A DNA stretch of 64,000 nt from Oculina patagonica. Taxonomy: Eukaryota. The stretch lies in NCBI RefSeq assembly GCF_052425735.1, contig NC_135759.1, positions 28,520,001 to 28,584,000 of the forward strand. The letters run 5' to 3'. The notes beneath the pieces are model-generated. The model worked only from the letters and a program-made list of their open reading frames with translations, was not told the DNA's origin and made no database searches. The position numbers were made by a program, and so were the translations under genes. This document shows positions 2,652 to 26,516 of this stretch, one piece after another (the first letter of the stretch is position 1; each line of letters begins with the position of its first letter).

Positions 2652-5600
2652 TCATTCAAAAACATGAACGCAGTTGTCAGCTGGATCAGTGACAAGTAAT
2701 TGTCCGTTCTTTGAGATGGCAACAGACCAAGGTACCACATGTTTAGTGAGCTGTTGCCCAACTTCGTTGACAAACTCTCCATCCAGTGTAAACGCTCGTA
2801 GTCTTTGGTTGTCATAGTCACAAACGATCAGGTTGTTAAACCTGTCAACAGCAAATCCAAAAGGACCCTTTAACTGCCTAGCACGAGGTCCCTCACTACC
2901 AATATCATAGAGAAACAAACCTTCCTTACTGAACGCCTTTACGCAATGAACTCCATCATAGGACACAAAAAACATGTCTTGGTGAAAAACAGCGAACCAA
3001 GGGGACTCATCACAGTCTGGAGCACTGAAGGACTGTAACACTTCTGCACCGTCGGGGGAGAGGACCTTTACTGCTTTGTCGCCACTGTCACACACAATCA
3101 TGCAATCATTACGTGCAATAGATAACGCCCACGGAGACTTCAACCGGTCATTGGTGATATGCTTTATAAACTGACAACTTTCGGTGAACACCGAAATGGT
3201 ACCGGAATGGACAACAACGATTTCACCAGACCTGGTGAATGCTACTGAGAACGGCTCGTTAAGTCTCTCGGAGCCATCTCCCTTGTGACCAAATTCTCTC
3301 AAGAAATTGCCATCGGATGTGAACAGTTGAACTCTGTTATTTTGACAGTCTGCAACCGCAATGTTCCCTGTTTTGTTACACACTGCAATGTCAAATGGAT
3401 CGTCAAACTGTCCCCGTCCTGTCCCACCTGAGCCAAATTGATACACATGTTTGTACTGGTGTGCAGACACCTGAACACTCCAGGGACTACCAGTCAGCGG
3501 CTGGCCGTTAACAGCCATGATCACGTGATGCTGCCCAGGGCAATTTGGTGTGAAATGCACAATATATCTGCCATCTTGCTTGTTTTCGATCGTCTTTTCT
3601 AGATCTTCCCCCAACGGAGTCTTTACCGTAACTGCCACTTGGTCGTTCTTGTAATAGCACATTCTCCCCTCGAAATCTTTTGTTACGATGGCAAAATCGG
3701 TTTCTCTGCCAACGTCCCCTCCTTCGAAAGCTTTGCCTTCTGCCACTGATTGCAAAGAATTTGTAAAACTAACAATTACCTGACCCGGAAGTGTCTGCAG
3801 TACAGTTTGAATAGCTCCTTCATTTGTCACGTAACTGACATGCCATGGTCTGTAAATATTCATTTTTTCAACATTCAGAAGTCTTTGACAACGTTCAACA
3901 GCACTCTGTTGTTTCTGTAGAATTTCAAGACTGTTGTTTCTTTTCAGGATGGCTTCACAGTATTCCACGTTACTTTTTAACTGCGTGACAAGCAACCGGA
4001 ACTGTTCTTGCTGCATTGCGTGACTTCTTTGTTGTTCGTCATCAAGGGCATCTAACTCGGCCATGATGGCCATTTCATGTTCCTTTACAACTCGAATCAC
4101 TTGCTCAGCAGTTGTACGCGCATTTTTGCGGGCTAAAGCGATGTCTTCTCTCGTGCTTTTCAAAAACTCAGTTCCCTTTCTCATCTGTTTTTCAAAGTCG
4201 TCGATCTGTGTTTTTACATTCTGGAGAAACTCTTCCATTAGGACCTTGCTTTCATCAGCGGCAAGTTGTGTTTTCACTATGGTGTGACGATGATGCGTTA
4301 TGAGTGCACACTTGTTGCAAATACAGATTTGGCATTCTCGGCAGTAATATTCAAGTTGTTCATGTTCGTGATATTCTTCACCACACATGATAGGTCGGTT
4401 CATCCTCTCCAGCTCTTCTAACTTGAAACCTTTCAGAGATGGAAAACGAGATATCTTACTGAAATTCATCAAAAATTATTCAAAGTACACTCCAACCTCA
4501 ACAAAATTCGTAAAGATACATTTCCTGCAAAAGAAAGAACCCCATCCTTCCCCTTGGGCTTATGTCATTATTTTCCCTGGAGGGACCGACCTCCAGGGTA
4601 ATGGCGACCTTAATAGGGTGATCCTACGGGATGTAAGTAGAGAACAAATTTAAAGTTTAAACAGTAATGCCTCTTTCCATTTGAGAGTAAACCAACTAAA
4701 ACAACTGGCCGGGTTGTTAGAAAGACAATTTTCGCTAATCCTGGGCCTGTTGTTCAAAGTAGGATTAAGTCTTTTGACATTTCAGTGAGGTTCTGTTTTT
4801 ATGTTCTGTCCTCCAGTTTTGATGTCGACTTATTTCAAACTTCACAAAACATAAACAATTAAACACCTTTATACAAGAGAAATTGAACCCTCGATCAACT
4901 TTTAATCCTGGGTTAGTGTGAAACGGCTTTCGAACAATCCAACTCAGGGTTACAAATTAACCGAGATTCTAATTTCCATTGTATAGAAATGTTTAAATAA
5001 TAATGAATTGATGTCTCGAGAGAAAGAACTCAGAGCAAATTCTAAGTTCACAGATGGGACTGTGAAATGAAATGTTTTCACTGCTAATGACGCTAATGGT
5101 TTGTGGTTTTGGCATTGGTCAATACCAAAAGTAAAGGACTAATTACTTAAACAAACATCTGTGCCAACGGCAAGAAGTGGTCAATCGCGCTTCGTACAGC
5201 CGGGCCCTGGGGATAATTTAATTTTCTTTCAAACGAACCTTCAAAGCCGATTTCCTTTCTGGACGCGAAGCTTGATGCCGTCAAGGCATCAAGCTTTTTC
5301 CTGACGTTTCTAATTTCGCTTCCAATTTCATTCAGCTGATCTTTTACGTTGTCTTCATCCTTCTTCCATTGGCTTAGAAGTTCTTTGTAGTGATCTTCAA
5401 TTTCAGGATCCATGCACTCAGTTTCCAGATTGTCGATAGCTGCTCTGTACTGAACTCCTCCCAGTCTCACCAGAGTATCCCGGATGTCTTGCCAGTATGT
5501 GTTAAACGTTGCGTCATCAACCGAAGCGTGCTCGGCATGAGCGTACACGGTGTTTCTAAAATACTTGACACGGGCAATATCTGCTTCACGACTCACGTCT

Positions 5601-5944
5601 GTTAAAGCAGGAAATGTGTCCCAGCCAGTTGCTGGAGAAGGTAAGCCACAGATGTTTCGCAACAGAACCATCAAAAGAGTGATGTCAAAGTCTCTTGAAG
5701 ACACCGAATTAGGGATAGCAGGAAAGAGCTTTCCCCATTGTGTTGGATTAATAATTTTCCTTGTTCTGAGCGTTTGCAACGTGGTTTTATTTCCCGCTAA
5801 GACTGTGTGAAGATTTGCTGGTGGGTGGATGGCATCGAAAGTGCCTCTGAGGGCCTGAGTACCAACATCAACCAGCAGACGACACAAGCGAGCGTAGTTT
5901 GTTGTCTCCTTGGTGGATAACGTTGCTGGTGAGGAACAAGCCAT
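2652..5944 (-). CDS. HEPN(DZIP3-type)-B-box-coiled coil-filamin-NHL protein, copy 1 (RING-less TRIM-NHL-like, ~827 aa; exons 5944-5239 and 4429-2652)
   Basis: Exon 1 has the HEPN R-x5-H motif (RVKYFRNTVYAH) and FDITLLMVLLRNIC, typical of DZIP3-like HEPN. Donor GAAG|GTTCGT at 5239/5238 and acceptor ctgaaag|GT at 4430/4429 are both phase 1. Exon 2 has a B-box (CGEEYH..YYCRECQICICNKC..HHRH), heptad-rich coil, filamin end (VNGQPLTGSPWSVQV) and NHL repeats (GQFDDPFDIAV, NNRVQLF). Confidence 0.88.
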
Positions 5945-6843
5945 TAGAAAAACGTGTCACTGGTTGAAAAATAACAGAAATAGCATACGATTAGGAACGA
6001 TAGTTAAAACTGCGGAACATAAGACCGCCAAAGGCTGTTTTCTTGTTTTTATTGTGCGCGTTTTAACACAATCTAAGAGTTCAAAACTGGCTTGACTTGT
6101 CTTAACATCAACAGTGTCGATCGCGAGTATGAAGGGAGGAATTACGCCTAGCTTTTTCCTACTTCAAAATAAATGTAGCCTAGTATTCATAAGGTAAGTT
6201 TACAAGGTAAAAACAAGCTTTACACCAGTGGCAAGATTCAGGGAGCTTGCCCCCACTTTAAGATACATCCCAAGTCTTACTGCGGTACAATGATCCTTTT
6301 TTATAATCCATCCGAAAACAAGCCTTCCCCCCTAAAAAAGCTCCCCAGATCTTGAACGCAAAAATCCATCCAAAAATAAGCCATCTCGAATATTAATTGG
6401 TCCATGGGCTTGTACAGCTTTTGAGAAAATCGATGCGGTTTTCCATGATTTCTGTTGACTTCGCATCCATACGACCATATCTGCAGTTGTCAAAACCGGG
6501 GATTTCAATAGCAGACAGCAACAGCCAAGAATCACTTTCTAGCTGACGAGACATTCCAAGAATCGAAGTGAAGCCGCACTCGCCTCGCTTTCATATACTC
6601 GACCCAAACTCCTCCGCGCGTTCCTAGTGTAGTGCTTGTCTTGTATTTTAAGTTGTCAGAGAATGCTCAGAGTCCTGTAATGTTTGTTAATAGACTGTAA
6701 GACTTGTTTCGGGCTTCCTATCGTTACGCCTAGAGAGTTTTATCATGTGGTATTCTCGTCTACAGCAAAAAATGTTCCGATACAGTATCCTGTCCAAATA
6801 CCATAACTTGTTGATAATGAAATGTCTAACACAATTTAATTAA

Positions 6844-8126
6844 CCCTCGGCGTGGGGGGGGGGGGGGGAAGAGAATTTACTCTAAACCTCTTAGACCTTC
6901 CAATAGCTGTTTATTCATCCTTTGCTCAAATCTTGATATGTCAATCATGTGTCCACGATATTTGACGTTTCCATGGCAACGTCATAATTACATGCAGGTC
7001 TTGCCAAAAATCGTCATTTTTAACATTTTTCTTTATTTTTCCAGTTTTATGAAACAGAATTGAAAGATTTGTTTATTTTTACATTCCATATGCATTCTGG
7101 CTTGATTTTGCGTCAATTTCCTTTATTTTCTGCTTTTCTAAGAAAATGGTGAAATCCAAGATGGCGGCCCTAATAACGTCACATCCAACAAAAAAATATC
7201 TCATCTTGAAGAGTACGCTACGGGCGTTCTACTCAGTGCAAAATAATCTCACTGCCCCTTAATACAACGAAAACCCTGGGGAGGGGTTCCATCCAACCCC
7301 CCTTTTCAGGCGCGTAGCTGAAGTTTTTGTAAGGGTGTTCGTATTGACAGGAATAATTATTAAGGGGGGGTTATTTAATACGAGCGCCGAAAGCGCGAGC
7401 GTCTAGGGGGATCTGGGGGCATGTCCCCCCAGAATATTTTGAATCTAGAGGCCCGGAAATGCTATTTTCAGCATTGTGTACGTCAAACTCGATGGAGTGT
7501 AAAATAACAGGTATTTTAAGTCATAACAACAATATTTCCGGCGTTTTGTTAACTTGATACATTCATACATACATACCGGCTTAGTACACTAAACGTTTTA
7601 CAAAAGCTTGACGTGTGCTGCAAAGGTTAAGTCCCCACCCCGGCTCCACCTTCAATGTACTAAAAGCGGCGTAAAATCGTCAATATGCACTAAATACACC
7701 ATAGTTAGTACTAACTATGAATGCACGTATCACCTGGGTCCCCCGAAATTGTAATCCCCGCATTTTGTTTATTGATACTCCATTTATCAACTCCCGGACG
7801 CCTGTTAAGGAAATACTTTTTCAGCAATGGGATTATTTTGACTACATATAATACTAGGGCACTAAGATCCATTCTCCTAACAATTTAATACGTTCCCGAT
7901 ACTTTTAGCGTTTTCGTGCAGGGTAATTTAAAAGCTGCAACTCTCAAAGTTTGTTTTCCATTCCCCCACTATTTGCTAAAAGCTGAAAATCAACAGTTTG
8001 TGTTTTCGGTCCTCCATTATTGACCTCCAAAGGGGGTTCGTTCGAACCCCTCGAACCCCCCCCCCCCCCTCCTACGCGCCTGCTTTTCCAATGGTGGGGG
8101 TCTGAATTTGCTTTTACGTCCGGGGG
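6844..8126. mobile_element. TTAA-flanked (piggyBac-like) MITE containing a nested MITE
   Basis: TTAA at 6840-43 and 8127-30; termini CCCTCGGCGT / ACGTCCGGGGG. Confidence 0.65.
7307..8082. mobile_element. Nested non-autonomous DNA transposon
   Basis: TIR CAGGCGCGTAG / CTACGCGCCTG, flanked by a CTTTT duplication. Confidence 0.75.
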
Positions 8127-9478
8127 TTAATAGCTAGTCTGCTGCACCTTTGATGGGATGTGGCGCGGCCAATTGCAGCCCAAGACAACTGATGGAAAAT
8201 ATTAAACATATATCATAGCGCAATTTTCGAAACTAACTTAAGTGTGCACTAAACAAATAATTGTCTGACTTGTTGCTATTCATTAGGCAAACGTATTAAT
8301 TAATGGGTTGGATAAATCCTCTCATACTGTGTTATAACACTTGAAAATATTGTTTTGACCCAGATAACATCAAACTTAAGCACCAAGTTTAGCTTCCTAT
8401 TGGTTTGATCACTGGACTGAAGAACACCTCGGGCGATTTGTCTTTCTCGAATCGACTGGTTCGTTTAAAGGATTGCGATGAATGACAATACTTTAAAACC
8501 TGTGCACTGTTCGGAAAACACGCGAATAGAATATTGCACCAAATTTTGGGTTTGTTTCAAGTTTTGCCATTTCTTATCGCTGGAGCATTTATAAACTGCT
8601 AAATGTTTGCAGTTAAGTCCCGTGATCCAAACGAAGCGTAACATTTATTCATAAATAAAAAATGAATATATTAACTTGATTGCAATTTCGTCGCAAAACT
8701 TCTTAGTTTAACTTCTAAGTACAGAAACCTAGTTTTCTTGTCCCCACCAGATATGTCTGATAACCTGCGCTTTTTCTTGAGCATATTTCAATATCAATCA
8801 ATCATGTCAAATAAAAAAATAACGCCAATAACATACAACAGGCGACCCTAGTTGTCTAATTTGGAAGTTAGTTTGGTGCATGTGATTTGTCGTAAATTCA
8901 GATTACGGAGCCCTGTAACACAATAATTCCCGAAAGAACGGAAGTGACCTCTTAGTCTGAAGCTTTCTAGAACAGTTCTAGAGATGACAACCTTGCCAAC
9001 TTGTACCTGACAACCCTGCCAAATTATCACATTTTTCTGTAACAATTCTGAGCATCGCTCGTTTTGTTGATTAGCATTTGAGTCCCGCTTTAAAAGACCG
9101 AAGTAATAAACGACTTCATGGCATTCACGCCAACAAACCCTGTCGCGTGTTTTTCTTTAAATTCCTGATTTATATATTTGTTGCCACGGGTTCTGGATAT
9201 AGAAAAACAAAATCGGCACTGCTTGTGGGCCTTAAATAAGTATCATCGCTAAATATCACTGTTGAAATTTGCACAGAAGAAATAGAATGTATAGAAGCCG
9301 ACGTGTAAGGTCACATCATGCCTACCATATCATGGTATTATATTTATCCTTTCACGAAATACAAGCGTGAATAAAATTTAAAAAGGCAGAGATACACTAC
9401 GTATCCCCTCTACTTTCATGTTTCGCTAGCACATTAATTAATTAATTAAGGTGCATTTTCAGCAACACCAGGGGATTA

Positions 9479-9788
9479 AAGCCTGGTTTCCATATGATCG
9501 CAGACGATCGCAATGGATCGCAGACGATCGCAGAATTGTAGGTTCTGCGATCTGCGATCATATGGAAACACACTTTTGCGATCGTTTGCGATCGTCTTAT
9601 CCCATAATATTGATAATCGATCCCATCATTCAACACTTCTGCAATCGTCTGCGATCATTTGCGGGGGGGATCATATGGAAACAGTTCGCTCTTCGATCTT
9701 TGCGATCACACGGTTCAGTAAATTTCTGTGATTTTGCGATCGTCTGCGATCCACTGCGATCGTCTGCGATCATATGGAAACCAGGCTT
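9479..9788. mobile_element. Palindromic MITE (Harbinger-like)
   Basis: TIR AGCCTGGTTTCCATATGATCGCAGACGATCGCA at both ends, internal GCGATC repeats, TA/TWA flanks. Confidence 0.8.
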
Positions 9789-10090
9789 TAGTTACGATTT
9801 AGATCGATTTATAACAACCCGTTTACGAAACCGTGAAAGGGCCGATCATGCGATCTGTTTTCGGCATCCACATGTCGATTTGAGAACAAGGAGGAAAACT
9901 GTTACGCGATTTCTCAAAGTTGTTATCGATAATAAGGAGCACATAAACTACAAATGCGATACTAACCTGCAATCTCACAAATCGTGTGAACAAATGAAGG
10001 AAACGCTGGGATGAGCGACCGCTACTTCGTTGTCGATTCGTTGAATCACAAGATCAACTTTGCTTCTAAGGTCACACAAGGTTAGAAAGC

Positions 10091-10703
10091 CACAGGCGGC
10101 CCAAGCTCACAATTAGAGGAGTTAAAATATTTAACATAATTGTCTTTTGTAACCGTTCGCGAAACGTGACTCTCGACCGGCAGCATATGGAGGTGTTGTG
10201 TTACAACGGTTCTCGTTTATAAAGGTTTGTATGGGAGAATACGCTTTCGAATTTATAGCTAAATATAATGCGATTTTGACAATAAAATCAACTTACCTCA
10301 ATGTCCTGTCGTTACTTGTCTGTTGTTACCTCGGTTCTCAGGCCGATCCGAGGCGTTTTAAGCGAGTTATGCAATTTTTGGTTTCCACTACTTCTTCTTA
10401 GCAGTGGAAACCAAAAATTGCATAACTCGCTTAAAACGCCTCGGATCGGCCTGAGAACCGAGGTAACAACAGACATAACGACAGGACATTGAGGTAAGTT
10501 GATTTTATTGTCAAAATCTCATTATATTTAGCTATAAATTCGAAAGCGTATTCTCCCATACAAACCTTTATAAACGAGAATTAACCGTTGTAACACAACA
10601 CCTCCATATGCTGCCGGTCGAGAGTCACGTTTCGCGTACGGTTACAAAAGACAATTATGTTAAATATTTTAACTCCTCTAATTGTGAGCTTGGGCCGCCT
10701 GTG
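10091..10703. repeat. Near-perfect ~610-bp palindrome (two ~300-bp arms, ~7-nt loop at ~10393-10399)
   Basis: 10402-10703 is the reverse complement of 10091-10392, with a few mismatches and a 4-nt indel. Confidence 0.95.
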
Positions 10704-11202
10704 ATCAACTTTGCTTCAAAGGTCACACAAGAGTTGAGCATCATGTGATCTGCGTCACGCAACGTTAAAATATGGTACCTTTGCTGATTATGTTCCTCAT
10801 TTATAGTCCAATGACCGAAAACTGTAGATTTCTCTCTGCCAAAACCGCCATATTATCCAACATGCCTATTGTAACAGCACTCAGTCTGAAAACAGTTCTA
10901 TCTTAATAGTTTTAGGAATTTTATTTATGTTTTGAAGTATTTTATGCTCTCTTGACACAAGTAGTGGAATCCTGATTACTTGCACTGCTTGCACCTCCTG
11001 ACCGAGTGATTGATCCGAAGCTAAATTTGAAAATAAGATAACCATCGTTTCAGTTTAATATGCCGTAAAATTGCCGATAAAACAGCTTTATAAGGACTTA
11101 TGAGTGGCCAGTAATGGGCTCCTGGAGTGGCTTATGGGGAAGCATATACATCAGTCATTTTCCGTGAGGCCGGGGCTGGGAGTTACGAATCAGCGCTCTG
11201 GA

Positions 11203-11613: not shown

Positions 11614-11865
11614 CGCTCTGGAACAACATTGAAACTCTAATAAGAGATGTATTGTACTGGAGAAAGCTTCTCTAAATACTTAACGCTTTGATCTGCACTT
11701 AATTTGCCAATTTTTTGTTAATTGCCTATTTTGCAATTTGAGGGTAGTGGGGAAGGGGGTGCAAAGCACGTTACGGTGTTTTTGTTACGGTGCAAAGCAC
11801 TACAGTGTAATCAATATAATGGTTCTGCAGATACCACTATTTAAAATTCCCACCACGAAGTCATG

Positions 11866-12105: not shown

Positions 12106-12539
12106 CACGAAGTCATTAGGTTAAACGAGCCACTTTTTCTTTTACGTTTTATTTGATGAATTAAGACAGACAGAGTAGGGTAGAATGAGAAACAGGACGT
12201 ACACGCTTTGCTCAATAAAATATACTTTTGCCGAATTCCGGTATTTTATTTTTGTTAGAATACTGAAAAAACTAGAACTGAAAATTTTAGGCAGTAAAAA
12301 ACTGGCCATGATTTTCCTTTTTTCCATCGAGTTAAGACACTAAGCGTGTTCTATTGGAAATCCGCGCATCCGACTGGTTCTCCCATCGTTGTCTATTCGC
12401 TATTATAAAAAACTAGCAATGATATATTGCAATTCCTGAGTTTTGATTGGTTGACAGACAATGGTATATGAGCTGATATACCATTGCCCACCAAAATGGT
12501 AACTCAAATATTGCAATTCTAAGGGCGTTTATAATAAAA

Positions 12540-12573
<34 letters not shown>

Positions 12574-12857
12574 CGTTATAGCCAACTCGGCAACACGCGC
12601 TCGTGGAAAAATTGTTAAATAGTACACGATCGTTGACCTTAAAATATTTTTCTGGGAGCGATAGTCAACTGGAAAACCTTTGACTCGTAGTCTAATCATG
12701 TCTACTGAATTGTTAGAACGAAACACGGATTTTTGCGTGCGTAATCTTACAGGGTACTTTCCAAAACTAAATGAATAAAGTGTTTTTTAAGAATGACCGT
12801 AAATGACTGTTCTCACAATACAGTCGATTTTCACTTAAAACAATGAATTTCTGACCT

Positions 12858-15800
12858 TCACTGCAAAACATGAACACAGTTTTCGCTAAAATCTGTAACA
12901 AACAGCTGTCCAGTTGTTGACACTGCAACAGACCCAGCACACTTAAGTCCCGTGAACTGTTCTTTTATCGTGTTGACAAACTTTCCATCCAGTGCAAATA
13001 CCTGAAGTCTGCTGTTACCAGAGTCACAAACAATCAGGTTATTGAACTTGTCAATGGCGATTCCAGTTGGATAACACAACTGTCCGTCACCAGACCCTTT
13101 GCTGCCAATATCATACAGAAACACTCCATCGTTACCAAACACCTTGACAACATGAGCCAAGCCATAGGACACAAAGAAAGTATCCTCGTGGTAAGCAACG
13201 AACAACGGGGGCTCATTGCAATCTGGAGCACTGAACGACTGTATCAATTCTTTACCGTCAGAGGAGAGGACCTTGATTGACTTGTTACCCCAATCAGACA
13301 CCACCAAGCGGCCATCACAAGCAACTGTCAAGAATCTTGGATTGTTCAAGTGTTCGTTAGTGATGTTTTCAACGAAGTGACCACTCTCGGCAAAATAATA
13401 CATTCCGCAACAATCAATGATAATGACGTCACCAGACCTGGTGAATGTTACTGAAATGGGTTCAATTAGTTTCTCAGCAGATCCCCTCTGACTAAATTCT
13501 GTTAAATAACTACCATCTGAACTAAAAAGCTGTACTCTGTTATTTTTAGCATCCGCCACTGCAACGTTTCCTGTCTTGTCACTTACTGCAATATCGCAGG
13601 GATTTTCAAATTGTCCTTGTCCTTTCCCACGTGACCCAAAAGAAGCTACAGTTTGGTACCGATGTGGGGACACGTGAACACTCCATGGACTACTAGTCAG
13701 CGGGTAACCATTAACTGCGACTGCCACGTTGTAGTGTCCATCACAATCTGGTCTATAAGACACGATATACTCGCCGTTTTCTTTGTCTTCAATCTTGAAG
13801 CAAAGCTCCATTCCTGTTGGGGTCTGAACTTTTACTGTGATCTGATCATCGTCATTACAACACGGTCTTCCTTCTGAATCTTTCGTTGTAATTGTAAAGT
13901 TAGATTCTCGTCCAACTTCTGCCTCTTTCAGACCTTTCCCTGTCGCCACTGATTGCAAAGGATCAGTGTCACGAATAACCACGTGACCTGGAACTGCTCG
14001 TCGTACTCTCTGAACTTCTTCTTCATTTGTCTCGTACCTAACGTGCAGTGCTTTGTAAATGTGAATTTTCTCTGAATGTAGTAGGCCTTTATGTCGTTCT
14101 GTGACATCTTGCTGCGCTTGTAGAATTTCAACGTTTATGTTTCTTTCTAAGATGGCTTCCCAAGTTTCTGAAGATGCTTTCAACTGCGTGACAGACAGCT
14201 TAAAGTGTTCTTGTTGTATTGCGTGACGTCTTTGTTCTGCTTCTTCAAGTATGTCTAATTTAGTTACCATAGCAATCCCGTGCTCCTTTAATACTCGAGT
14301 GAGTTCTTCAACAGTTGTCAGTACTTTGTTTCGTGCTTCGGCAATTTTTTCTCTGCTTTTCCTTAACAATTCTGTCATTTTCTCTATTTGTATCTCACGC
14401 TCAGCAATTTCTTCCTTCATTTCCTGAAGAACCTCCACCATCTTTAGTTTTTGTTGGTCAGCGGCTTGTTGGATACCCACCTTGGTGTGATGGGTATGAC
14501 GTGTTTGTCCACACTTGTAACAAATACAAACTTTGCAGTTCTGACAATAATAATCGAGTGGCTCATTCTCGTGATATTTCTCTCCACACATGATAGAGGT
14601 ATTCAACGATTTTTCCAGCTTCGAGCTTTTACCTTTTCAGGCGGAATAAAAAAAATAAAGCATTCATTATAATGAAGAGAGAATGTTATCATGGATATAC
14701 CATTAGCTATCAGCATTATCTCACAACTTACTCCAACAGAAGAAACTAGTGTATTTGCCGAAACGTCGGATTTTGGTTTGTTTCAAACACATTTTTTGTT
14801 TACTATGACACCTGGTTACAAATCTAGTTTTTAAAAAACAGAACAAGCATTTACAAAAAAAGAACTTACCTAACTAGTACTAAGATTACTAACTGGGAGG
14901 GGGCTGACCAGTTAGTTGTGCGTGGCCGAGGAGTTGAACTTGGGATTGCCTAAACAAGATGGGGGTCGGAGGGGAGTCAGACAAGTTTAACACTCCTTTT
15001 AACCCTTTTCCCCTTTTCCCTTCCCCCCCCCCCACCCCCCAGATCAGCCCCAGCAATCCACTGCCGGAACCCATTTGTACTCCGGGGTGCGAAGAAGCAC
15101 CGGGAAAGTTAGATGTCTTGCACTCACTCACTGAATAAAAAAAAAATACGACTTCCGCCTAAACCCATAAACAACGAAAAGTTTTAGTTTAGGATTTTGT
15201 TTATCAGAAAAGAAAGAAGAACTGTATCGTACGATGAAGCTCAGGGCTAAGTGTTCAGGAACAAAAAGTGATTTCTGGATATCAATTACTACTACTGGTC
15301 ATCGCGTTTCCTACATAGACTACCCTGAGATAAACATAAATGCTTGAACTAATCTAGAAAATCAAATTTCGGTCATATATACAAGTTATACCTTCATCAC
15401 CAGTTTTTTTCGTAGATGGCGCATTTGATGCTGTCAATTGCAAGTTATCGAGCAGTTTCCTGACGTTTTTGACCTCGGATCCGATCTCTTTCAGTTCATG
15501 TTTGATGTCTTTTTCATCCTTCAAGTATTGGCTTATAAGTTCTTTGTAGTGATCCTCAATTTCAGGATCCATGCACTCAGTTTCCAGATTGTCGATAGCT
15601 GCTCTGTACTGAACTCCTCCCAGTCTCACCAATGCGCCTGAGATCTTTTGCCAGTATGCGCTGAATGTTGCGTCATCAATCGAAGCGTGCTCTGCGTGAG
15701 CGTACACAGTGTTTCTAAAACACTTCACACGAACGATATCCGCTTCACGACTCACGTCTGTAATAGCAGGAAGTGTGTCCCAGCCAGTTGTTGGAGAAGG

Positions 15801-16103
15801 TAAGCCACATATGTTTCGGAAAAGAACCATCAAAAGAGTGATGTCAAACTCCCTGGAAGACACCAAATTGGGGATGGCAGGGAAAAGTTTTTCCCATTGT
15901 GTTGCATTAATAATTTTCCTTGCTCTGAGTGATTGCAAGGTTGTTTTATTTCTAGCCAAAACTGTGTGAAGGGTTTTTGGTGCATGGATGTCATCGAATG
16001 TGCCTCTGAGGGCCTGGGTGCCGACATCAACCAGCAGACGACACAAGCGAGCGTAGTTTGTTGTCTCCTTGGTGGAGGAAGCTGTTGGTGCTGCACCAGC
16101 CAT
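12858..16103 (-). CDS. HEPN-B-box-coiled coil-filamin-NHL protein, copy 2 (~828 aa; exons 16103-15392 and 14632-12858)
   Basis: HEPN motif RVKCFRNTVYAH. Donor GAAG|GTATAA at 15392/15391; acceptor after a T-rich tract, ctgaaaag|GT at 14633/14632. Phase 1 and in frame. Same domain order as copy 1. Confidence 0.88.
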
Positions 16104-16818
16104 TAGATCAAGTTGCTGATGATAAGTCTAATGGGATGAAAAATTAATTGAGAGTTTTTGCTTCCTAGGGTTGTTGATTTAATGTTACCACTACCAACGG
16201 CATAAGGTCAAGTAGAATGTTGTTTTTGAGATATTTTTTTAGAAGCTGTAGAAAAACAATATAACTTCCTTAAGTTGCAGCTAATGATACAAAAAGGGGG
16301 GATATGTAGGCTGGCGTCGCAAACTTTTATTTGGTTTACACTGAATTTATTTTTGAGCATGGATTAGTCTGCGAATCCCAGAGAAGAAAGCCTGCTCTGG
16401 GTGAGCCAGGCAGACCACATGTCTTAATGGTGCGCATTGAAGAAATATAGATAAACATTACGTCGGCTTCGATTTACTACAAAATACAAAATTTACTCTA
16501 AATGATTCAAAAAAAGTTATAAGATAAAATGTTGACTGAGTCTTGTGTCATATTTTCCTTGCCGTCCTGAGTCGTTTTAGGTGTCATTTTGCCAGATCAT
16601 TTATCAACTGATAGGTGATATATCCTGGGATATACGTAGCAAGCCAGGATTCGTCCGAAATCTCACAATGCGCTGCATAACCGCAGTTTTTCTAAATGCA
16701 AAAACGTTACATTGACAATTTGTTGAATAATGAAACAGTTATCCTACTAAATCTTGCGAAATGTCGTCTGATTTGAGCCCACTCGGCCCACGACCTCGTC
16801 GGCCCTTGTCTGCTATAA

Positions 16819-17059
16819 GGCTACGTTTACAATGAACCGTACCGAACGGGACCGGACCGGATCGGCTTCTGTTTACATGGAACGGTTTGGAACCGATTCA
16901 GGCGGTTACATGAGACCGTTCTGGAACCGGTCCGGAACGGATCCAAAACTGGACCTGCAAAACAGCAGGTCCAGTTTTGGATCCGTTCTGGACCGGTTCC
17001 AGAACGGATCCGATTTTCGGACCGGATTCGTTTGGAACCGGTCCCGAGTAAGCATAGCC
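16819..17059. mobile_element. Harbinger-like MITE
   Basis: TIR GGCTACGTTTAC / GTAAGCATAGCC, TAA TSD, internal palindromic GGAACCGGTCC repeats. Confidence 0.8.
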
Positions 17060-18446
17060 TAAGTTTCTGGCGAAATTCCGCTGGATTTCGCTGGGTAATT
17101 GTCAAAGATTTGCGTTATTTTGGTTTTTAGCACCACATCGGTTTAATCTCTCAGTATTTTGCTGAAACTCCGTAACTAGCTTTTATAGGTACACCTATTC
17201 AGCGTTCCTACTGCGGAGTATGATTGGCAGGTTTGCTCCGTGACGGTGTAGATGGAAACTGAATTTGATAGATAAGACTTCCCCACACTTGATGAAGCTG
17301 GATGTTGGAATATTGTGACATAACGGCGTTATATTTTGCATTCTTTATAGTATAATTATACTGAACATTTTCGTAGGTAAATGGTCAATATATTGACGAA
17401 AGACCTTCGTCTTTCATTGGCAAGTGGTACTATAGGGTATCATCAAATGTCAAAACCGAAAAAAATAAACTTTCGAAACTGTCTGAAGATCCATGCAAAT
17501 TATATATTTTACACGTAATGAACGTAGAAATACTTTGTAAATCGTTAAAATAAGAAAGGAAAAAAGATAAAAGTAGGCTAGGGCATAGAGCCTGCACTGA
17601 CATCTTGGCACTTCACACGGTAAAGATGAAATAGATCACTTTGGGATGTTCGTTGCAAGTAGATTTAATTATATGCATGAGCAGAAATGTCGATACAAAA
17701 CAAACTTGTGTTCAGAGAAATCAAATAAAAGTGAAATTAATGGGTGAAATAATTATACAAAACCATAACTGCACGTACTTTATGATATGAAGACCTAGCG
17801 TTGCAATGAATGTCATAATAGTACTTCACAGAATAATGAACTGAATGAATACATTAATACGAGATTTGATAAACCAGCATCAGTCATTAGTCGAGACTGG
17901 GATATGCCGTATTCGCCATAGGTCGAGGTTGAGTATTAAAACTCGGACTTTCGAGATTGTGGGAAATCTCGATAGATATATACACACAACACCTACAGTA
18001 CACACCGCGCACAAGCAAGATAAGTGTTGCAGCATAAAGCATTTGAATCTACAAACAAACCTGAATTTATCACGCCCAAACGGGAAGTCCATCGACCGTA
18101 CAATAGAAAGCAGTGAAAGGAAACAATGCATTCACCACTTCAGAGGAAAACTGGGGCAAGTCTCATCTCGCAGTCGCTTGTGGGACCGTCACTGGGGACA
18201 AAACAAACGACGGGAAGCCATTTTGTCCTCAGTAATGTACCACACAATCGGGAGAATAAGTGCCAGTTTGGCAAATCTTCGTTGAAGCACTCGAAAAGTT
18301 TCCGAATTATTTCATCCAATCAAAAACCAGCGCGAGCGCTCACGCGTGCCCGGAAAGCAATTGCGCGAACAATTACGTCATGTTGCTTAGCAACTTTAGG
18401 GACGAACACCGCGGGCTCAGTCCCGCCCCGGAGGCGAGATTTTAAT

Positions 18447-20322
18447 AGGCCTTATTCGTATTCCCCGACGGCCCTGGGACGAGAGCCTTCTGAACATGAA
18501 TGCGAGGCTAATGCGGGGTACTTTGCACAAATTGCAAAGAAACATATGGAAAATTGCGACTGGGTTGCCGAAAAACCTTAAAAATTATAAACGCTTTGAG
18601 GATCTAGAGCTAGTCGGTGATCTGCAGGCTAGAGGGATACCAGTGTCAATCAGAAAAAATTAGAAGATCTGGTAGAACTGACCGAGAAGGCTAACAAATT
18701 TACACTGAATCGTCGGGAACGGTTTCGAGTCAGCAGTACTTGCGAAGTAAACTTCAACACCAGGTTATGTTTCCAGCTAATCTCTTATTTTTATTTTCAG
18801 TGTACATCCGACTTAAGTGAGGGATTAAACTTTCCTTGAGGATATTTATATTGCTATTTAAGAAAGGGGTTCAGAAGAGGGAACTTGCTATATTAAATTT
18901 GATCACGCACACAATCTCAGTTGTTTATTTTTTTAAACAATAGCTACTGTAGCACTGTGATAACTTTTTTCACTGCAAGAGCATGAAATGAGCGTGAAAC
19001 GATTAACAGCATCACTTGAGCCAAATGAAAATCTAGCCTTTTAATCAAAAATTGTGTGTAGTTAGCTTCAAAACGAATTTGTAAATTGCTTTGTAATTTA
19101 GTGAGTTTGCCGATCTTGATGTGCGTGCGAGATTTTAATCTGAAACATCCAGTTCTGTTTCAGACCATTTTCGTGAAAGAATATTAAATAATAATAATAA
19201 TAATAATAATAATATCTTTTATTTAGACACGATAAATTTACAGCATAGCTGATGTGGTCGTGTTTAAGTTACCTAAGAAATAATCATAACAAAAATAACA
19301 CTAAGACAAATACGAATACTAACTAAACTTATTTACAATATAAAAGATATTTACAATATTTACATGCACTAGCCTATTTACAATTTTCTATTTACAATAT
19401 CGAGATTTTTGAGGGCCTTCAGTTCCCTATTGAAGGATGCTAAGCTTTCTTTAGCCCTCCAGGCATTGGGCAAATTATTCCACCTTTTTGCGCCAATGTA
19501 TGAAACTGATTTCATGATCATTAAACTATCGACATTCTCACTTAACTGAGCTAAGAAAATTATCTTTTATTCGAACATTCGATGATTTAGGGGCAAAATG
19601 AATTTGGAAGTTTAGATTTTGTGATTTTAAGTCTTTCTAGCCAGTTTGCATGTACCGGCGTGCGAGAACATTAATTAAATTTACTAGTTCTTTTAAAGAC
19701 GTTTTGGCAGCAGCACAGAAACATAGCAGTCAAACTGTGAAAGAAATCAGTTCAGTGGAATTAAAAGCTATTCTTTTTACTAAACAGTGAGAGCATTTAA
19801 CAGCAAACGAATTTGTAAATAATTAATGCGCCATTTCGTTCAGTTGTTTTTGTCCATATGCCGATCAAAATATGTAGTCAATACGCAGCATCTCTCAGAC
19901 ATTTATTCTTATTTTTTTAAAATAATAGCAATACAAATCTCTCCAAGTTAAGTATATTGCCTCTGGTAAGTCGGATGTACAATCAAAACAAATATTAACA
20001 GATTGGGGTCATTACCTTGCGACTCGATGACTGACTTGCACTCCCCCGATTCGACTACTTCAAGGAAAATTTGTTAGGCTTCTCGGTCAGTTCTACCAGA
20101 TCTTCTATTTTTTTCTGATTGACACTGGTATCCCTCTAGCCTGCAGATCACCTCCTAGCTCTAGATCCTCAAAGTGTTTATTATTTTTAAGGTTTTTCGG
20201 CAACCCAGTCGCAATTTTCCATACGTTTCTTTGCAATTTCGAGCAAAGTACCCCGCATTAGCCTCGCATTCATGTTTAGAAGGCTCTCGCCCCAGGGCCG
20301 TCGGGGAATACGAATAAGGCCT
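18447..20322. mobile_element. Non-autonomous DNA transposon with ~245-bp TIRs (AGGCC...GGCCT ends), carrying a nested LINE 3' fragment
   Basis: 18447-18690 is the reverse complement of 20078-20322. AAT on both flanks. Confidence 0.85.
19188..19530 (-). mobile_element. 3' end fragment of a CR1/L2-type LINE with a (TTA)n tail
   Basis: Minus strand encodes SVSYIGAKRWNNLP, followed by a 3' UTR and a tandem ATT tail (TAA run at ~19190-19213). Confidence 0.7.
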
Positions 20323-20324
20323 AA

Positions 20325-21362
20325 TAGTTATTATAAAAATTGTAAAAAGTATAAAGTTAAAAACTATCTAATTAAAATTGATAGGGGTATAAATATGAAT
20401 ATAATTAATATAATTAACAGTAATAGTTGACGGATATAATTAAAACTACTTAAAAATATTAAAAATATGTGTAATCTTGATTTTTATTTGCGATCATGCA
20501 GGCTTCCTTCAGAAAGCTTATGTTCTTGATAGTGTTCTTGTGGCGGCGCTGTTTTAGGAGCTTCTTAAAGTTCTTTAGGGACGGGGACTCTTTGAGTGAG
20601 GTTGGAATGAGGTCCCACGCAAGAGGACCTCTATATCGTAAGGAGTTTCTGCCAGTGTCCATGTTAAATCTCGGTAGTACAAAGTGATTACTGTTTCTAA
20701 GATTATAGTGTGGATTGGCTATACTAAAGAGGTTTGAAATTTTATCAGGAGTTATGTTACTATTTACTTTGTACATTAGGATAAGTAATTTCTTTTTATA
20801 TTGAAATGATAGTGGCTCCCATCCAGTCGCTTCTAGGGCATCTTGATGCGATATGTCCCATGGTAGCCTATGGATGATTTCAGCTGCCCTTACATGAATA
20901 TGTTCAAGCTCGTTCATCAAAGATGGTGTGCTAGTGCCCCAAACTAAGCTGCAATAGGTAATAGTTGGCATGATGCTGCTAAAGTATATTGTTTCTAGTG
21001 TGCTTGCTGGTAGGTATTTAAATCTTTTGAGCTGCTTTACTTTCTTTCCAAGAGATTTACAGAGGTGCTCCAAGTGACTGCTCCAAGAGAGCTGGAAGTC
21101 ATTGATAACCCCCAGACATCTTGTTTCAGGGACGACATTCAGGAACTTATCTCCTAGTTTGATGGGTCTCAGTGGACCACAGAAAAATCTGTGCGATATG
21201 ATCATAGCCTCGGACTTCCCGGTGTGTATAGTTAGTTTGTTGTTTCTGCACCAGAGCGAAATCTCTGATAGGGCTCTGTTTAAACCGCCGACTACTTCAT
21301 CTACATTGTCACCAATGACATGCAGCGTCGTGTCATCAGCATACAGTTCCAGATTGCCCTCA
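20325..21362 (-). mobile_element. 5'-truncated CR1/L2-group LINE (RT C-terminal half)
   Basis: LELYADDTT at ~21350, continuing into ORF 20459-21205 (CLGVIND..LSWSSHL, YCSLVWG, HYNLR, RGPLAWDLIP). Confidence 0.88.
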
Positions 21363-22192
21363 TGTTACCACAAGTGACTACGAGATAAAATTCGCCCCAG
21401 TTTTCTTCTTAATATAATAAAGGCTGTCGCAAAGTACAGAGGGGCACCCAGGAAGGGTTTAAGTTAAAATCGGACGAAGAGCAATGATTTATTTCCAGAA
21501 ATAGTTACTGTAATAATTTTTAATAATATTTCTAACATATATCTAAAGACGGTAATTAGGTAAAAGGCAAATTACAACTAACAAAATTGGTGCGGTTTTA
21601 GTAAACAGTTAATCGATGCACTAAAGAACGTAGTGAAATCTAACATGCCTGTGTTTCGGAAACAAAAAGCTAGAAGTTAATGAGTATTTTTACCAGGAAT
21701 CGAAAGAAATTACTGGCAATCAGAAGACTTGAAAAAACTTTCCGGGGAACCTACAGAAAACACTGATAAGACAAAGTCCTGAACGTATCTGACGACCCTG
21801 ACTACTTTTGGATTTAGCACTCTTATGGTCGATCCAGTTAAGTAAAGAGAAATTGCTTTGGATAAAGATTCTCAGAAGAAATTACACAAAAAATAACTTA
21901 TATTACATCGAAACATAGTAAGTTTTTGAATAAGTTTTTTCCAAAAGCCCCTCAGATCAGTTTGGTCGTGCAAACAAGTCATGTTAAGTTAAAGGTCGCT
22001 TCATCAGTTCGTCGTTACAACCGGAGAGTCGCGACTTTAACTTTAGGTGGGGGGGGGGGGGGGGGTCGTTGCTTTTGGAACTTCACAGTTTATTAGTTCA
22101 TTGCGAAAAATAATGTCAACATCACGCATAGTTTTGCGAATTTCGGGCGAATGCCCCGATTTTTTCGGAATGACCTTCATCATTACATGATG

Positions 22193-23017
22193 TAGTCCAG
22201 TCCCTGAACTCTCTCTTCCGAGCGCCCTTTAAAGGGTTTGTACCTAGGCGCGAGAAGAGAGAGTCCAGGATACCTTGCATGCGCATGCTCAGAATGAAGC
22301 AATCAGAAGCGAGGAGTGTGGCGTCACTTGCTTGGGACGCGCGCGCTAGATTAAAAATGCTCGCTCAAATGACAAATTCAACTACGCAACCAAGTGCACG
22401 AATAAATGCAAGAAAAAACTGTGCTAAATTGCATCCAAAGCCAATTCAATAAAAAGATGTACTAGGAATAGTTGACGTTTTGGCTGTTAGCTTTTAGTAG
22501 ACACTGATTGACAAGCTAGGCTTTTTTACAGTTATAAACAATTATTGGATGAGGTTTTTGTTCGGCTGATAACACTTAACCGAGACCTTGATTATTCCAA
22601 ATATCACACATACCGAATCTAATAATTGTTTTATTATACATTGTTTTCTGGAAAAGAAAGTTATGACAAACGATTTCACCTTGTTTCAAAAATTGTGCTA
22701 TAAATTCCTGATGGTCGTCCTACTAAATCGTGGAATAGTTCCTTCCCAATTTTTGTTAGTCATTTTGTGTTTCCCGAGACTTAATTGTCCAGCAATTTTT
22801 GAACTTTGGTCAATCTATTTCTCGTTTGATGAAGTGAATCGACGAACTATGAATTTCCTTCGCCGCCAGATGCCTGACACATTGATCTTGGAAATCATGC
22901 AATGCGCGCGTAACCTACAGCGCTAGCGTATGTAAGTTATCCTGGACTCTCTCTTCTCGCGCCTGGGTCCAACCCCTTTAAAGGGCTCGCAGAAGAAAGA
23001 GTTCAGGGACTGGACTA
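22193..23017. mobile_element. Non-autonomous TIR element with TAG...CTA ends and a 9-bp TSD (Academ-like)
   Basis: ~80-bp TIR starting TAGTCCAGTCCCTGAACTCT. TSD TACATGATG at 22184-22192 and 23018-23026. Confidence 0.85.
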
Positions 23018-23330
23018 TACATGATGGTGCTGAAACAGCGCTTATAAAAGTCGTCTTCATCCCGCGTAAATCTTTTTCTTTTGAATTTTCTATTGCTTTG
23101 TTCCGCAGATGTGGCTCTTGTTGAGGTAAGATGTAGCGATAAGGCAAGATAGGTAATTTCTGGATAAGGAGATGTAGTGATGAAGGTAAACGTTAAAAGA
23201 TGTTCTATGCCAATATAAACGAAGGGAGCTAAACTAAAGAAAATGGGTACTATACAAGTTTTGTTTGGAAACGCTACTAGGAATCTTCTAGGGAAACAAA
23301 GATGTAACTTGGGATGCTTGATGATTTCAG

Positions 23331-26300
23331 TTACTTAAATATTTGAACATAGTTTTTGCTGGTGTCAGCGATAAATAGCGCCCCAGTAGCTGATACAGCA
23401 ATAGACAAAGGGCATTCGAGCCATTTAAGGCCGAAAATGGATTGTCCTTGTATCGTGTTTACAAATTTTCCTTCCAGTGTGAAAACTTTCAGATTACTGT
23501 TATCCCCGTCACATACTATTAAATTGTTAAACTTGTCGACGGCGAGTCCAAGAGGCTTACTTAACTGTCCGTCACCAGACTTCTCACTGCCAACATCACA
23601 CAGAAATTCCCCCTCTTTATTAAATACTTTCACACAATGCGCCGCAGGGTAAGACACAAAGAACATGTCTTGGTGACAAACAGCAATCCACGGGGACTCA
23701 TCACAGTCGGGAGCACTGAGGGACTGTAGCAATTCTGTACCTTCAGGGGAGAGGACCTTGACCGTCTTAGCAGCTATCTCGGACACCACCAGGCGGCCAT
23801 CACAAGCAACAGTCAAGCGGACTGGTATTTTAACGTGTTTGTTGGTGATTGTTTTGATAAACTGACCCTTCTCGGTAAAACAAAGCATTGCACTGGAAGC
23901 AACAATAATGACGTCACCGGAATTAGTGAATGCAACTGAAGTGGGATCGCTTCGTTTCTTAGCAGCTGGTCCCTTCGGAACAAACTCAGTTAAGCACTCA
24001 AAATATCGATTAAAGAGATGTATTCTTTGTTTCTTTCGATCAGCCACTGCAAAGTTCCCGGTCTTACTATCTACTGCAACATCGCAGAGGTCTTTAAATT
24101 TTGGGTCTCCTTTCGCACGTGACCCAATATAATATACAAACATGTATTGATGTGGACAAACCTGAACGCTCCAGGGACTGCCAGGCAGCGGTTGATCATT
24201 AACTGCGATCATCACTTGATGATCTCCATGACAATTTGGAGTGGAAGTTACACTATATTTACCATCTCCTCTGACTTCAACCTTGTTCTTGAGGTCCTTT
24301 CCGGATGGAGTCTGAATTTCTACTGTTATCTGATCGAATGCATTATAACACTGTTTTCCATCTGAGTCATTTGTTACGATTGTAAAGTATCCTTCTAAAC
24401 CAACTTGAGCTTTTAGGTTTAACCATTTCACTACTGACCGCAGAGGATTCGTGTTACTTACATCAACTAGACCTGGAACTGTACTTCTCACATTCTGGAC
24501 ATACTCTTCATTTACCTTGTAATGAACATGCGATGGTTTGTAAATGTCCATTTTTGTTGACTTTAGGCTGTTTAGGAGACCTTTACACCTTTCAATGGCA
24601 GCTTGCTGTGCTTGTAGAATTTCAAAGCTGATGTTTCTTTGTAATATTGCCTCGCAATTTTTCACAGACGCTTTCAGCTGGGTAATGGACGTTTGAAAGT
24701 GCTCCAATTGTATTGCGTGGTATCCTTTTTCTCTTTCTTCAAGAACATCTAACTCGTACTCCATGGTCTTCTCGTGTTCCTTCAAAACTCGAATGAGTTC
24801 TTCGGCGGTTGTCAGTAACTTGTTACGTGCTGCAGCAATTTTTTCTCTGCTCTTCCTTAACAATTCTGTCGTTTTTTCCGTTTGCATCTCTCGCTCATCA
24901 ATTTTTTCCTTCATTTCCTGTAGAACCTCCTCCATCTGTTGTTTCTGTTGTTCGGCGGCTTGCTCGATATCGACTTTGGTGTGATGAGTATGACGTGTTT
25001 GTCCACACTTGTCACAAATGAAAACTTTGCATTCTTGACAATAGTAATCGAGTGGCTCATTCTCGTGATGTTTCTCTCTACACATGGTGGAGCTCTCCAA
25101 AACCTCTTCCGTCTTGAAGCTTTTATCTTATCGAGCACAACAAAAATATGTTAAACAAAAGCAACGTTGCTACAGCTTACATAAGCTGCTGAAACAGACA
25201 AACGGGGGAGGCCGGGTACTCCCCAAAGTGAACTGTACTGGGAGGCTCCGCCCGAAAAAGATACCTTTTTTAGACTGGAGGTATAAAAAAGGGTAGAGAT
25301 TTCACGAGTTGGAGTATATACAAAGGGTAGTGAAACTGCCATTTTATAGGTACTCTCAAAGAGACCCACCAAATGGTCGATTCACTTATAAATGAAAATA
25401 CTTAAAAGCATTAAGGGGTTATTCAAGTGAACAGGCCGTATCCAGACTTTTCGGACAACAGAAGCAATTGCAAAGTTCCAAAACGCAAGCCACTTTATAG
25501 GGGTCAATTTTCGAAATCTTGAAGGCCCAGAAATACTCTTTTTGGGGTAGTATTAGCAAAAGAAACACTTCTTTCACATTTACTTACTTACTAGTAATGC
25601 AAAGCCTCTTACAGGAACAGGAAACAAATATTAATAAATTCAAAATTTTTACTGAAGCAAATGCCTTGGTTCGCCTGTTACTAGCAACAACCTTGGTGGA
25701 AAATTAACTTAACTACTAAACATTGGTCACCTTGCCTGTCACATGAGCAGCTGTACACTTTATATTGATAAAAAGAAACCTAGAAAACAATTTGAACCTT
25801 TACAACTAACCTTCATCGCTGGTTTCTTTTGCGTTAGTCACAGTTGATGCTGCTAAATCATCAAGCTTTTTCACAACATTTTTTATCTCTGTTCCAATCT
25901 CTTTCAGCTCATCTCTAATGTTTCCCTCATCCTTCTTCCACTGATTGAGAAGTTCTTTGTAGTGATTTTCAATTTCAGGGTCCATGCACTCAGTTTCCAG
26001 ATTGTCGATAGCTGCTCTGTACTGAACTCCTCCCAATCTCACCAGAGTGTCCCGGATGTCTTGCCAGTATGTATTGAATGTTGCGTCATCAACTGAAGCG
26101 TGCTCAGCATGACCGTACACGGTGTTTCTAAAATACTTAACACGAGCGATATCCGCTTCACGACTCACGTCTGTTACAACAGGAAGTGTGTCCCAACCAG
26201 TTGCTGGAGAAGGTAAGCCACATAAATTCCGCAACAAAACCATCAAAAGTGTTATATCAAAATGGGCTGTTGACACTGAAGTAGGGATGGCTGGAAAAAG

Positions 26301-26516
26301 CTTTCCCCATTGTGTGGGATTGATAATTTTCCTGGCCCTGAGGGACTGTAACATGGCTTTATTTCCTGCTAAAACTGTGTGAAGATTTGCTGGTGGGTGG
26401 ATGGCATCGAATGTGTCTCTAAGTGCCTGTGTACCAACGTCAACCAGCAGACGACACAAGCGAGCATAGTTTGTTGTCTCCTTGGTGGAGGAAGCTATTG
26501 GTGGTGCAGCAGCCAT
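23331..26516 (-). CDS. HEPN-B-box-coiled coil-filamin-NHL protein, copy 3 (~833 aa; exons 26516-25811 and 25126-23331)
   Basis: HEPN motif RVKYFRNTVYGH. Donor GAAG|GTTAGT at 25811/25810; acceptor gataag|AT at 25127/25126. Phase 1 and in frame. Same domain order as copies 1 and 2. Confidence 0.88.

Follow-up and report, generated by a model that had tools for sequence, protein, structure and literature searches.

RING-less TRIM-NHL genes with an N-terminal HEPN head in the stony coral Oculina patagonica

What does a TRIM protein do when a putative ribonuclease domain stands where its RING should be? TRIM proteins are central innate-immune sensors of animals, and how clustering activates them has been worked out only for members that carry a RING E3 ubiquitin ligase head. 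The question is raised by a window of 64,000 nucleotides on the chromosome-scale contig C2 of the stony coral Oculina patagonica (C2:28,520,001-28,584,000; positions given below without a contig name are those of the window). The window holds three two-exon genes on the minus strand, spaced about 10 kb apart, in each of which a first exon encoding a HEPN domain is joined to a second exon encoding the B-box, coiled coil, filamin and NHL parts of a TRIM-NHL protein. A first-pass annotation of the same DNA had described them as a tandem array of fusion genes in which a nuclease has taken the place of the RING. As set out below, these are real, expressed, RING-less HEPN-TRIM-NHL genes, and the most interesting new point is the repeated exchange of RING and HEPN heads on one chassis.

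The six open reading frames (ORFs) underlying that description, one short and one long per unit, were all recovered on the minus strand where the first-pass annotation had placed them, and the start codons of successive units are 10,159 and 10,413 bp apart. In unit 1, exon 1 (5239-5944) encodes the HEPN cassette, which consists of an N-terminal tail, the HEPN_DZIP3 domain, a long helix and a low-complexity tail with a phase-1 donor at its end; the R-x5-H motif of the domain reads RNTVYAH (5537-5557). An intron of 809 nt with GT..AG ends (4430-5238), inside which lies a dispersed repeat at about 4764-4960, leads to exon 2 (2652-4429), which encodes B-box 2, the coiled coil, the filamin domain and the NHL propeller, stop codon included. 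Unit 2 follows the same plan, with its HEPN exon at 15392-16103 (RNTVYAH at 15696-15716), a GT..AG intron of 759 nt at 14633-15391 and exon 2, again with the four sensor parts and the stop codon, at 12858-14632. In unit 3, the corresponding stretches are 25811-26516 (RNTVYGH at 26109-26129), 25127-25810 (684 nt, GT..AG) and 23331-25126, the last of these with the same content and likewise ending in the stop codon. Exons were assigned by Pfam in all three units and by spliced contigs in units 1 and 2. The donors at 5239, 15392 and 25811 all read GAAG/GT (the slash marks the exon end), and each acceptor (4429, 14632 and 25126) continues the reading frame in phase 1, exactly as had been claimed. 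The joined exons of units 1, 2 and 3 encode proteins of 827, 828 and 833 amino acids, and these products agree at every residue with the deposited models P0093 (ACROYT_G006719), P0001 (ACROYT_G006720) and P0050 (RefSeq LOC144643932), respectively.

Transcription and splicing of units 1 and 2 were examined by aligning Logan contigs from RNA-like runs, the library type of these runs being a guess. At unit 1, contigs from runs X1 and X9, which come from separate studies, skip exactly 809 nt and join 4429 to 5239; the joints read CT..AC on the plus strand, that is, GT..AG on the gene strand, and their shorter sides measure 149 and 116 nt. At unit 2, the joint runs from 14632 to 15392 in a single contig of X1, which omits exactly 759 nt and has a shorter side of 31 nt. 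The exons of both units are covered in three or four runs, and the intron interiors have zero depth except at the dispersed repeat. Since a contig form that lacks the intron has the appearance of mRNA, splicing is taken as real despite the guessed library type. For unit 3, the junction is supported by an identical RefSeq model and by conservation. In the poly-A raw-read run X18, which is probably a 3'-tag library, there are almost no reads at the locus.

The same material bears on whether a RING could be encoded further upstream. No joint in the RNA-like contigs on units 1 and 2 links upstream sequence to the HEPN exon, and in-frame stops occur 4-9 codons before each ATG of the three units. 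Pfam matched no RING model in any of the six ORFs, and a tblastn search of the window with the RING N-terminus of the paralogue P0119 found no RING similarity (best E = 0.25). Together, the upstream stops and the tblastn result rule out an upstream RING-coding exon, in agreement with the absence of a RING asserted at the outset. Two transcript-like JGI contigs from two samples of other coral material, L039 (4,368 nt) and L040 (2,981 nt), each contain the full HEPN/B-box/filamin/NHL frame as a single uninterrupted ORF, with an in-frame stop five codons before the ATG. Just upstream of the unit 1 acceptor, the tetrapeptide KISR resembles the end of B-box 1 in a neighbouring RING gene; it is too short to be informative and was not used as evidence. 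An annotation artefact, in which the HEPN and TRIM-like ORFs would be separate genes or would follow a RING exon, could appeal to the model-based junction of unit 3 and to the guess about the runs. Set against this are the exact GT..AG joints in contigs of two studies with no depth in the intron interiors, the whole fusion running uninterrupted on L039 and L040, and a phase-1 structure kept at at least 15 loci of the genome, and an artefact is essentially excluded.

The short ORFs belong to HEPN_DZIP3 (Pfam PF18738): their scores of 218.5, 214.3 and 212.1 bits far exceed the cut-off of 27, and their matches span the profile from position 1 to 144 of 144; the N-terminal domain thus scores as the HEPN domain that had been recognised from the sequence alone. 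All three units keep its motif, R130-N-x-V-Y-[AG]-H136. The motif R-N-x-V-Y-[GA]-H is retained in about 115 of 120 cassettes drawn from many architectures and genera, and in a set of 91 cassettes the conservation of R130 and of H136 is 90% or more. An AlphaFold (AF2) model of the cassette, with a predicted local distance difference test score (pLDDT) of 83, places an all-alpha HEPN domain at residues 12-177 after a short disordered N-terminal tail. In the models, the domain is directly followed by a helix of 47 residues (180-226) and a disordered tether (227-250), within which the exon junction falls (residue 238). The best matches of the cassette model are residues 385-603 of human and mouse DZIP3 (E about 2e-8, template modelling score 0.63-0.66), a comparison with predicted structures on both sides. 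Against the Protein Data Bank (PDB), a Foldseek search with the HEPN model returned noise only, such as globins and Mcl-1, and a sequence search with the cassette found no solved relative. A homodimer prediction with two copies of residues 1-237 scored 0.14, where the mark of the tool is 0.32, and is evidence neither way. Pfam found no NACHT or NB-ARC NTPase in the three proteins.

The sensor half is that of a TRIM-NHL protein. In all three units, Pfam matches the long ORFs to zf-B_box (30-34 bits), Filamin and NHL. A full-length AlphaFold model of unit 2 (pLDDT 79) sets B-box 2 at residues 253-290, followed by an uninterrupted helix of 111 residues (291-401). Two shorter return helices (404-423 and 441-450) come next, then a filamin Ig domain (466-559) and finally a propeller of six NHL blades (565-827), which is modelled at pLDDT above 90. 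The modelled arrangement of helices, including the long single helix to be expected there, is the layout of a TRIM coiled coil, and by homology to solved TRIM proteins it would form an antiparallel coiled-coil homodimer. The nearest solved homologue is the filamin-NHL part of TRIM71 (6fpt, E 4e-52), followed by Thin, TRIM3, TRIM2, Brat and Mei-P26, and the B-box/coiled coil of TRIM3 (8amr) matches at E 5e-8. A feature search of the ESM Atlas returned generic TRIM-NHL clusters only, all below 0.9. The bulk charge of the NHL domain is -10 in unit 1, -9 in unit 2 and +3 in unit 3 and ranges from -11 to +3 overall. Acidic propellers in units 1 and 2 and a basic one in unit 3 argue against one RNA-binding surface and for different ligands; with charges this heterogeneous, a shared RNA-binding propeller is unsupported.

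How the HEPN cassette came to stand on this scaffold can be approached through the RING-type TRIM-NHL paralogues, which are 45-52% identical to the HEPN-headed genes across the sensor half. In these paralogues, the RING, B-box 1, B-box 2 and the remainder lie in one continuous ORF, with no intron there, and homology to the HEPN-headed genes starts in the linker just before B-box 2, at what is the start of exon 2. Because the closest RING paralogues align only from this boundary, the part replaced by the HEPN cassette is the RING together with B-box 1, which gives the earlier notion of a replaced RING its exact extent. One gene of this type, a single ORF of 749 amino acids with RING, B-box, filamin and NHL, lies on the plus strand about 85 kb past the end of the window (L008:2164-4413; C2:28,668,663-28,670,912). 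The cassette, for its part, is exon 1 in four other Oculina genes, three of them HEPN-NACHT(-LRR) genes and one with an unassigned C-terminus, and in all four a phase-1 donor (..AG G/GT..) follows the same helix and low-complexity tail. Three paralogues that share the cassette, P0183, P0169 and P0146, contain a NACHT-type NTPase. Judged from these gene structures, the HEPN cassette is a mobile first exon.

A maximum-likelihood tree of the sensor half (25 rows, 587 columns) interleaves the two head types. Unit 1 is sister to the RING-type neighbour described above (support 96/94), units 2 and 3 fall in a second HEPN clade (100/100), and a further RING gene is the sister (100/98) of a third HEPN clade, in which the Acropora and Stylophora proteins fall. 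A common origin of all HEPN-headed genes is rejected, as an approximately unbiased (AU) test over the whole sensor half does not admit them as one clade (difference in log-likelihood, delta lnL, = 71.9, p = 3.5e-6). The rejection holds for the B-box/coiled coil (p = 3.3e-4) and for the filamin/NHL part (p = 0.012) taken separately, so that a simple mosaic is no explanation. The heads themselves group differently: all 27 TRIM-linked HEPN heads form one clade, with a Shimodaira-Hasegawa-like approximate likelihood ratio test (SH-aLRT) support of 97, apart from the NACHT-linked heads. From an interleaved sensor tree and a single head clade, it follows that the head type changed at least two to three times on one chassis. 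Either a single lineage of HEPN cassettes came to be distributed among several lineages of TRIM-NHL genes or there was a return to RING heads, and the change may have come about by independent exon capture or by non-allelic recombination near B-box 2.

A further head type may exist on the same module. About 190 kb from the window, same-strand ORFs on the minus strand (L010:2930-6991; C2:28,774,929-28,778,990) encode a DED (67 bits), a TRADD-N domain (36 bits) and then filamin and NHL without B-box or coiled coil, which makes DED-TRADD-N a probable candidate for a third head on the filamin-NHL module. Together with the shared first exon and the interleaved sensor tree, this suggests interchangeable effector heads on one chassis. 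Three further ORFs with filamin-NHL only lie at C2:28.782, 28.797 and 28.804 Mb. In addition, P0168 (LOC144643930; L009:9000-9722, C2:28.817 Mb) combines DED and TRADD-N with a C-terminal HEPN_DZIP3 domain so that here the HEPN cassette family stands at the opposite terminus of a death adaptor. About 4.4 kb from P0168, another HEPN exon (L009:4605-5258) shares 73% identity with that of unit 1.

The three units are not recent copies of one another. Among them, the HEPN domain is 81-90% identical and the sensor parts are 38-67% identical, while the ratio of nonsynonymous to synonymous divergence (dN/dS) is 0.14-0.47 in every domain, which indicates purifying selection on all parts; all three genes look functional. 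Synonymous divergence (dS) is 0.36-0.48 over codons 1-186, 0.9-1.4 in the linker of exon 1 and 0.75-2.07 in exon 2. Given the low values over codons 1-186 relative to the linker and exon 2, the HEPN domain appears to have been homogenised, most simply by gene conversion. The description of the locus as a tandem array therefore holds for three same-strand units at 10-kb spacing, not for recent duplication, which is ruled out by a dS of at least 0.75 in exon 2 and by introns and flanks that cannot be aligned. The lack of alignment in the introns and flanks marks the array as old.

The three genes are part of a larger set. At least 150 HEPN_DZIP3 matches above cut-off were found in the Oculina genome among 264 candidates, about 100 of them within exon-like open frames of 230-260 amino acids. 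When genome-wide match positions were compared, at least 15 loci showed a HEPN exon 1-3 kb upstream of a sensor exon on the same strand; they lie on C2 (in a cluster at 28.2-28.55 Mb that includes the window), C13, C6 and C7, and seven of them correspond to deposited full-length models carrying PF18738. Stop codons interrupt several copies, which is what birth-and-death evolution would lead one to expect. HEPN_DZIP3 exons also form very large tandem arrays elsewhere: those at C8:26.59-27.15 and 29.47-30.56 Mb consist of cassette-type first exons of NACHT-LRR genes, and those at C9:12.45-13.54 Mb of HEPN domains in open frames of 1,400-1,600 amino acids with a different, intron-poor architecture.

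Nor is the architecture confined to O. patagonica, as it also occurs in Stylophora, Acropora and Orbicella. The proteins are named 'E3 ubiquitin-protein ligase TRIM71' and 'DZIP3' in Stylophora pistillata, 'TRIM71-like' in Acropora digitifera and 'NHLRC1-like' in Orbicella faveolata, and other Oculina genes are called 'ncl-1-like', which is the kind of mislabelling by automated pipelines that had been foreseen. A full-protein search of a representative library at 50% identity did not widen the known range beyond Scleractinia, its results being swamped by giant multi-NHL-repeat proteins and exon-2-only fragments. The HEPN family of DZIP3/hRUL138 was defined by Anantharaman et al. 2013 (PMC3710099), with fusions to TPR, zinc ribbon, RING, ankyrin, CARD, NACHT, DEATH and LRR domains and with lineage-specific expansions in Nematostella and oyster. 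HEPN-NACHT expansions have been described in corals and bivalves (PMC8260672, PMC10236652, PMC9646362), and HEPN heads occur within TRADD-N architectures (PMC8195603). In the literature searched, there was no report of HEPN fused to B-box/coiled coil/filamin/NHL, and searches under the TRIM71 or DZIP3 labels of coral expression studies found no description of, or functional data for, the architecture. The initial remark that no characterised protein has this architecture agrees with these searches, but it overstated the novelty: the head is known to be promiscuous in immune-like proteins of cnidarians and molluscs (PMC3710099, PMC8260672, PMC10236652, PMC9646362), and public gene models from at least four genera of corals already contain the fusion. 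Since the head is known from the cited papers and the combination is absent from the literature searched, the finding is new only as a combination, namely a known promiscuous effector head on a scaffold previously unreported for that head. To this the present analysis adds the first exon shared with HEPN-NACHT genes, the interleaving of RING and HEPN heads and the candidate DED-TRADD-N head. Stony corals thus possess a sizeable family of RING-less TRIM-NHL proteins, found in several genera, misleadingly named and uncharacterised in the literature searched.

Parts of these proteins resemble several known systems. The human E3 ligase DZIP3/hRUL138 has the same HEPN family and an R-x4-6-H motif, but its HEPN domain lies mid-protein with TPR repeats and a C-terminal RING and is not accompanied by a B-box, TRIM coiled coil, filamin or NHL domain, whereas in the coral proteins HEPN is the N-terminal head and the RING is absent. 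TRIM-NHL proteins such as TRIM71/LIN-41, TRIM2, TRIM3, TRIM32/Thin, Brat and Mei-P26 are homologous in B-box 2, the long coiled coil, filamin and the six-bladed NHL propeller; unlike them, the coral proteins lack the RING and B-box 1 and carry the HEPN cassette on a separate exon instead. The NLR-like HEPN-NACHT-LRR proteins of corals and bivalves share the first-exon cassette, with the same phase-1 donor after helix and tail, and also the general plan of an N-terminal effector on an oligomerising sensor scaffold. Their scaffold, however, combines a STAND NTPase with LRRs, in place of the TRIM coiled coil and NHL propeller, and their HEPN heads fall in separate clades. TRIM5alpha and TRIM21 share the proposed logic: an antiparallel dimer separates the heads until a multivalent target is met, and target-driven clustering then activates the RING. 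The predicted coiled-coil layout of the coral proteins is similar, although the effector of TRIM5alpha and TRIM21 is a RING E3 ligase and their sensor a PRY-SPRY domain, and activation of the coral proteins is a proposal only. RING domains, like HEPN domains, require dimerisation to act. RNase L, the Ire1 KEN domain, Cas13 and Csm6 are dimer-activated HEPN RNases; the coral domain differs from them in its activating module and has no sequence-level relation to any solved HEPN.

What, then, might the fusion do? The reading we favour, which we hold tentatively and at slightly less than an even chance, is that of an RNase activated by clustering. The filamin-NHL propeller would act as a fast-diverging sensor of a ligand, while the B-box and the 111-residue coiled coil would build a TRIM-style dimer and, on a multivalent target, higher-order assemblies. 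Such assembly could bring together the flexibly tethered HEPN heads, two R-x5-H motifs would form a composite RNase site, and RNA would be cleaved locally or generally in an antiviral, anti-transposon or cell-suicide response. We infer the steps from head pairing onward, and with them the RNase activity, its activation by dimers, the nature of the ligand and a role in immunity. This reading is favoured because the cassette occupies an effector position in NLR-like proteins, because it alternates with RING and because RING and HEPN share the dependence on dimers. The homogenisation of the HEPN domain tempers any contrast between a conserved effector and a diversifying sensor, as well as the monophyly of the heads. 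A broader version, in which a TRIM-type supramolecular immune sensor with an RNA-cleavage output has repeatedly exchanged RING, HEPN and probably DED-TRADD-N heads by exon shuffling or by recombination within the cluster, is possible but rather doubtful.

The clustering-activated RNase has to be set beside two other explanations. The HEPN head might be catalytically silent and serve as an RNA-binding or protein-docking module, so that the proteins would be post-transcriptional regulators or scaffolds in the manner of TRIM71/LIN-41 or Brat. RNase activity is undocumented for the DZIP3 HEPN family in the literature searched; some HEPN domains, such as that of sacsin, bind nucleotides, and sacsin is among the structural matches; and among solved structures, the sensor half comes nearest to RNA-regulatory TRIM-NHL proteins. 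Yet inactive HEPN domains typically lose the motif that is kept here in about 115 of 120 cassettes, and in NLR-like proteins it is this cassette that stands in the effector position, which leaves a silent head unlikely, if still a serious contender. The head could instead be an active RNase at all times, recruited by the propeller to RNAs or ribonucleoproteins (for example, transposon or endogenous transcripts) without any need for clustering. The predicted helix at 180-226 could zip two heads together permanently, the NHL domains of TRIM71, Brat and Mei-P26, the nearest solved relatives, bind RNA directly, and retroelements that look active abound in the genome, an apparently intact LINE within the window among them. 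A general RNase that is constitutively active would be toxic, however, and the NHL domains carry a strong net negative charge in units 1 and 2. Moreover, the predicted TRIM coiled-coil layout sets the N-terminal heads at opposite ends of the dimer, where, to our knowledge, they lie in every solved TRIM. We consider a constitutive RNase improbable.

The remainder of the window contains several unrelated features. The LINE retrotransposon, apparently intact, lies on the plus strand at 57076-62241, with an ORF1 of 310 amino acids that is rich in coiled coil and has no Pfam match and an ORF2 of 1,299 amino acids with an APE-type endonuclease, reverse transcriptase and zf-RVT. Also on the plus strand, a frame of 431 amino acids at 38701-39996 combines Peptidase_M28 with a transferrin-receptor-like dimerisation domain and has the appearance of a large exon from a gene of the glutamate carboxypeptidase II/NAALADase type. 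On the minus strand, a frame of 342 amino acids with a von Willebrand factor type A domain is found at 46893-47921, and the adjacent ORFs at 44987-45385 and 44292-44687 may be further exons. Between units 2 and 3, an ORF of 248 amino acids at 20459-21205 on the minus strand has no Pfam match; our impression is that it resembles the C-terminal tail of a non-LTR retrotransposon ORF2. In all RNA-like runs, contig depth reaches hundreds to thousands at 16340-17127, 6931-8112, 4764-4960, 12400-12596 and 18113-18300, compared with 3-50 in exons; these stretches are dispersed repeats or transposon fragments that abound in transcriptome assemblies, and one of them is the repeat inside the unit 1 intron.

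For the study of coral genomes, the immediate consequence concerns names, since E3 ligase labels such as TRIM71, DZIP3, NHLRC1 and ncl-1, which these genes bear in four or more genera of corals, will lead comparative and differential-expression studies astray. As a first exon shared between gene families, the phase-1 HEPN cassette offers a clean case of exon shuffling that feeds immune-receptor diversity in an early-branching animal. If the proposed mechanism is true, a dimerisation-dependent RNase has been traded with RING, and it would be the scaffold rather than the effector that carries the activation logic; TRIM scaffolds would then be general clustering-activated platforms for any dimerisation-dependent effector, and these genes a tractable system in which scaffold-borne activation could be tested. 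The proteins would also represent a eukaryotic counterpart of abortive defence in the style of Cas13 or RNase L and a new effector arm of coral immunity, with relevance to coral disease and virus biology.

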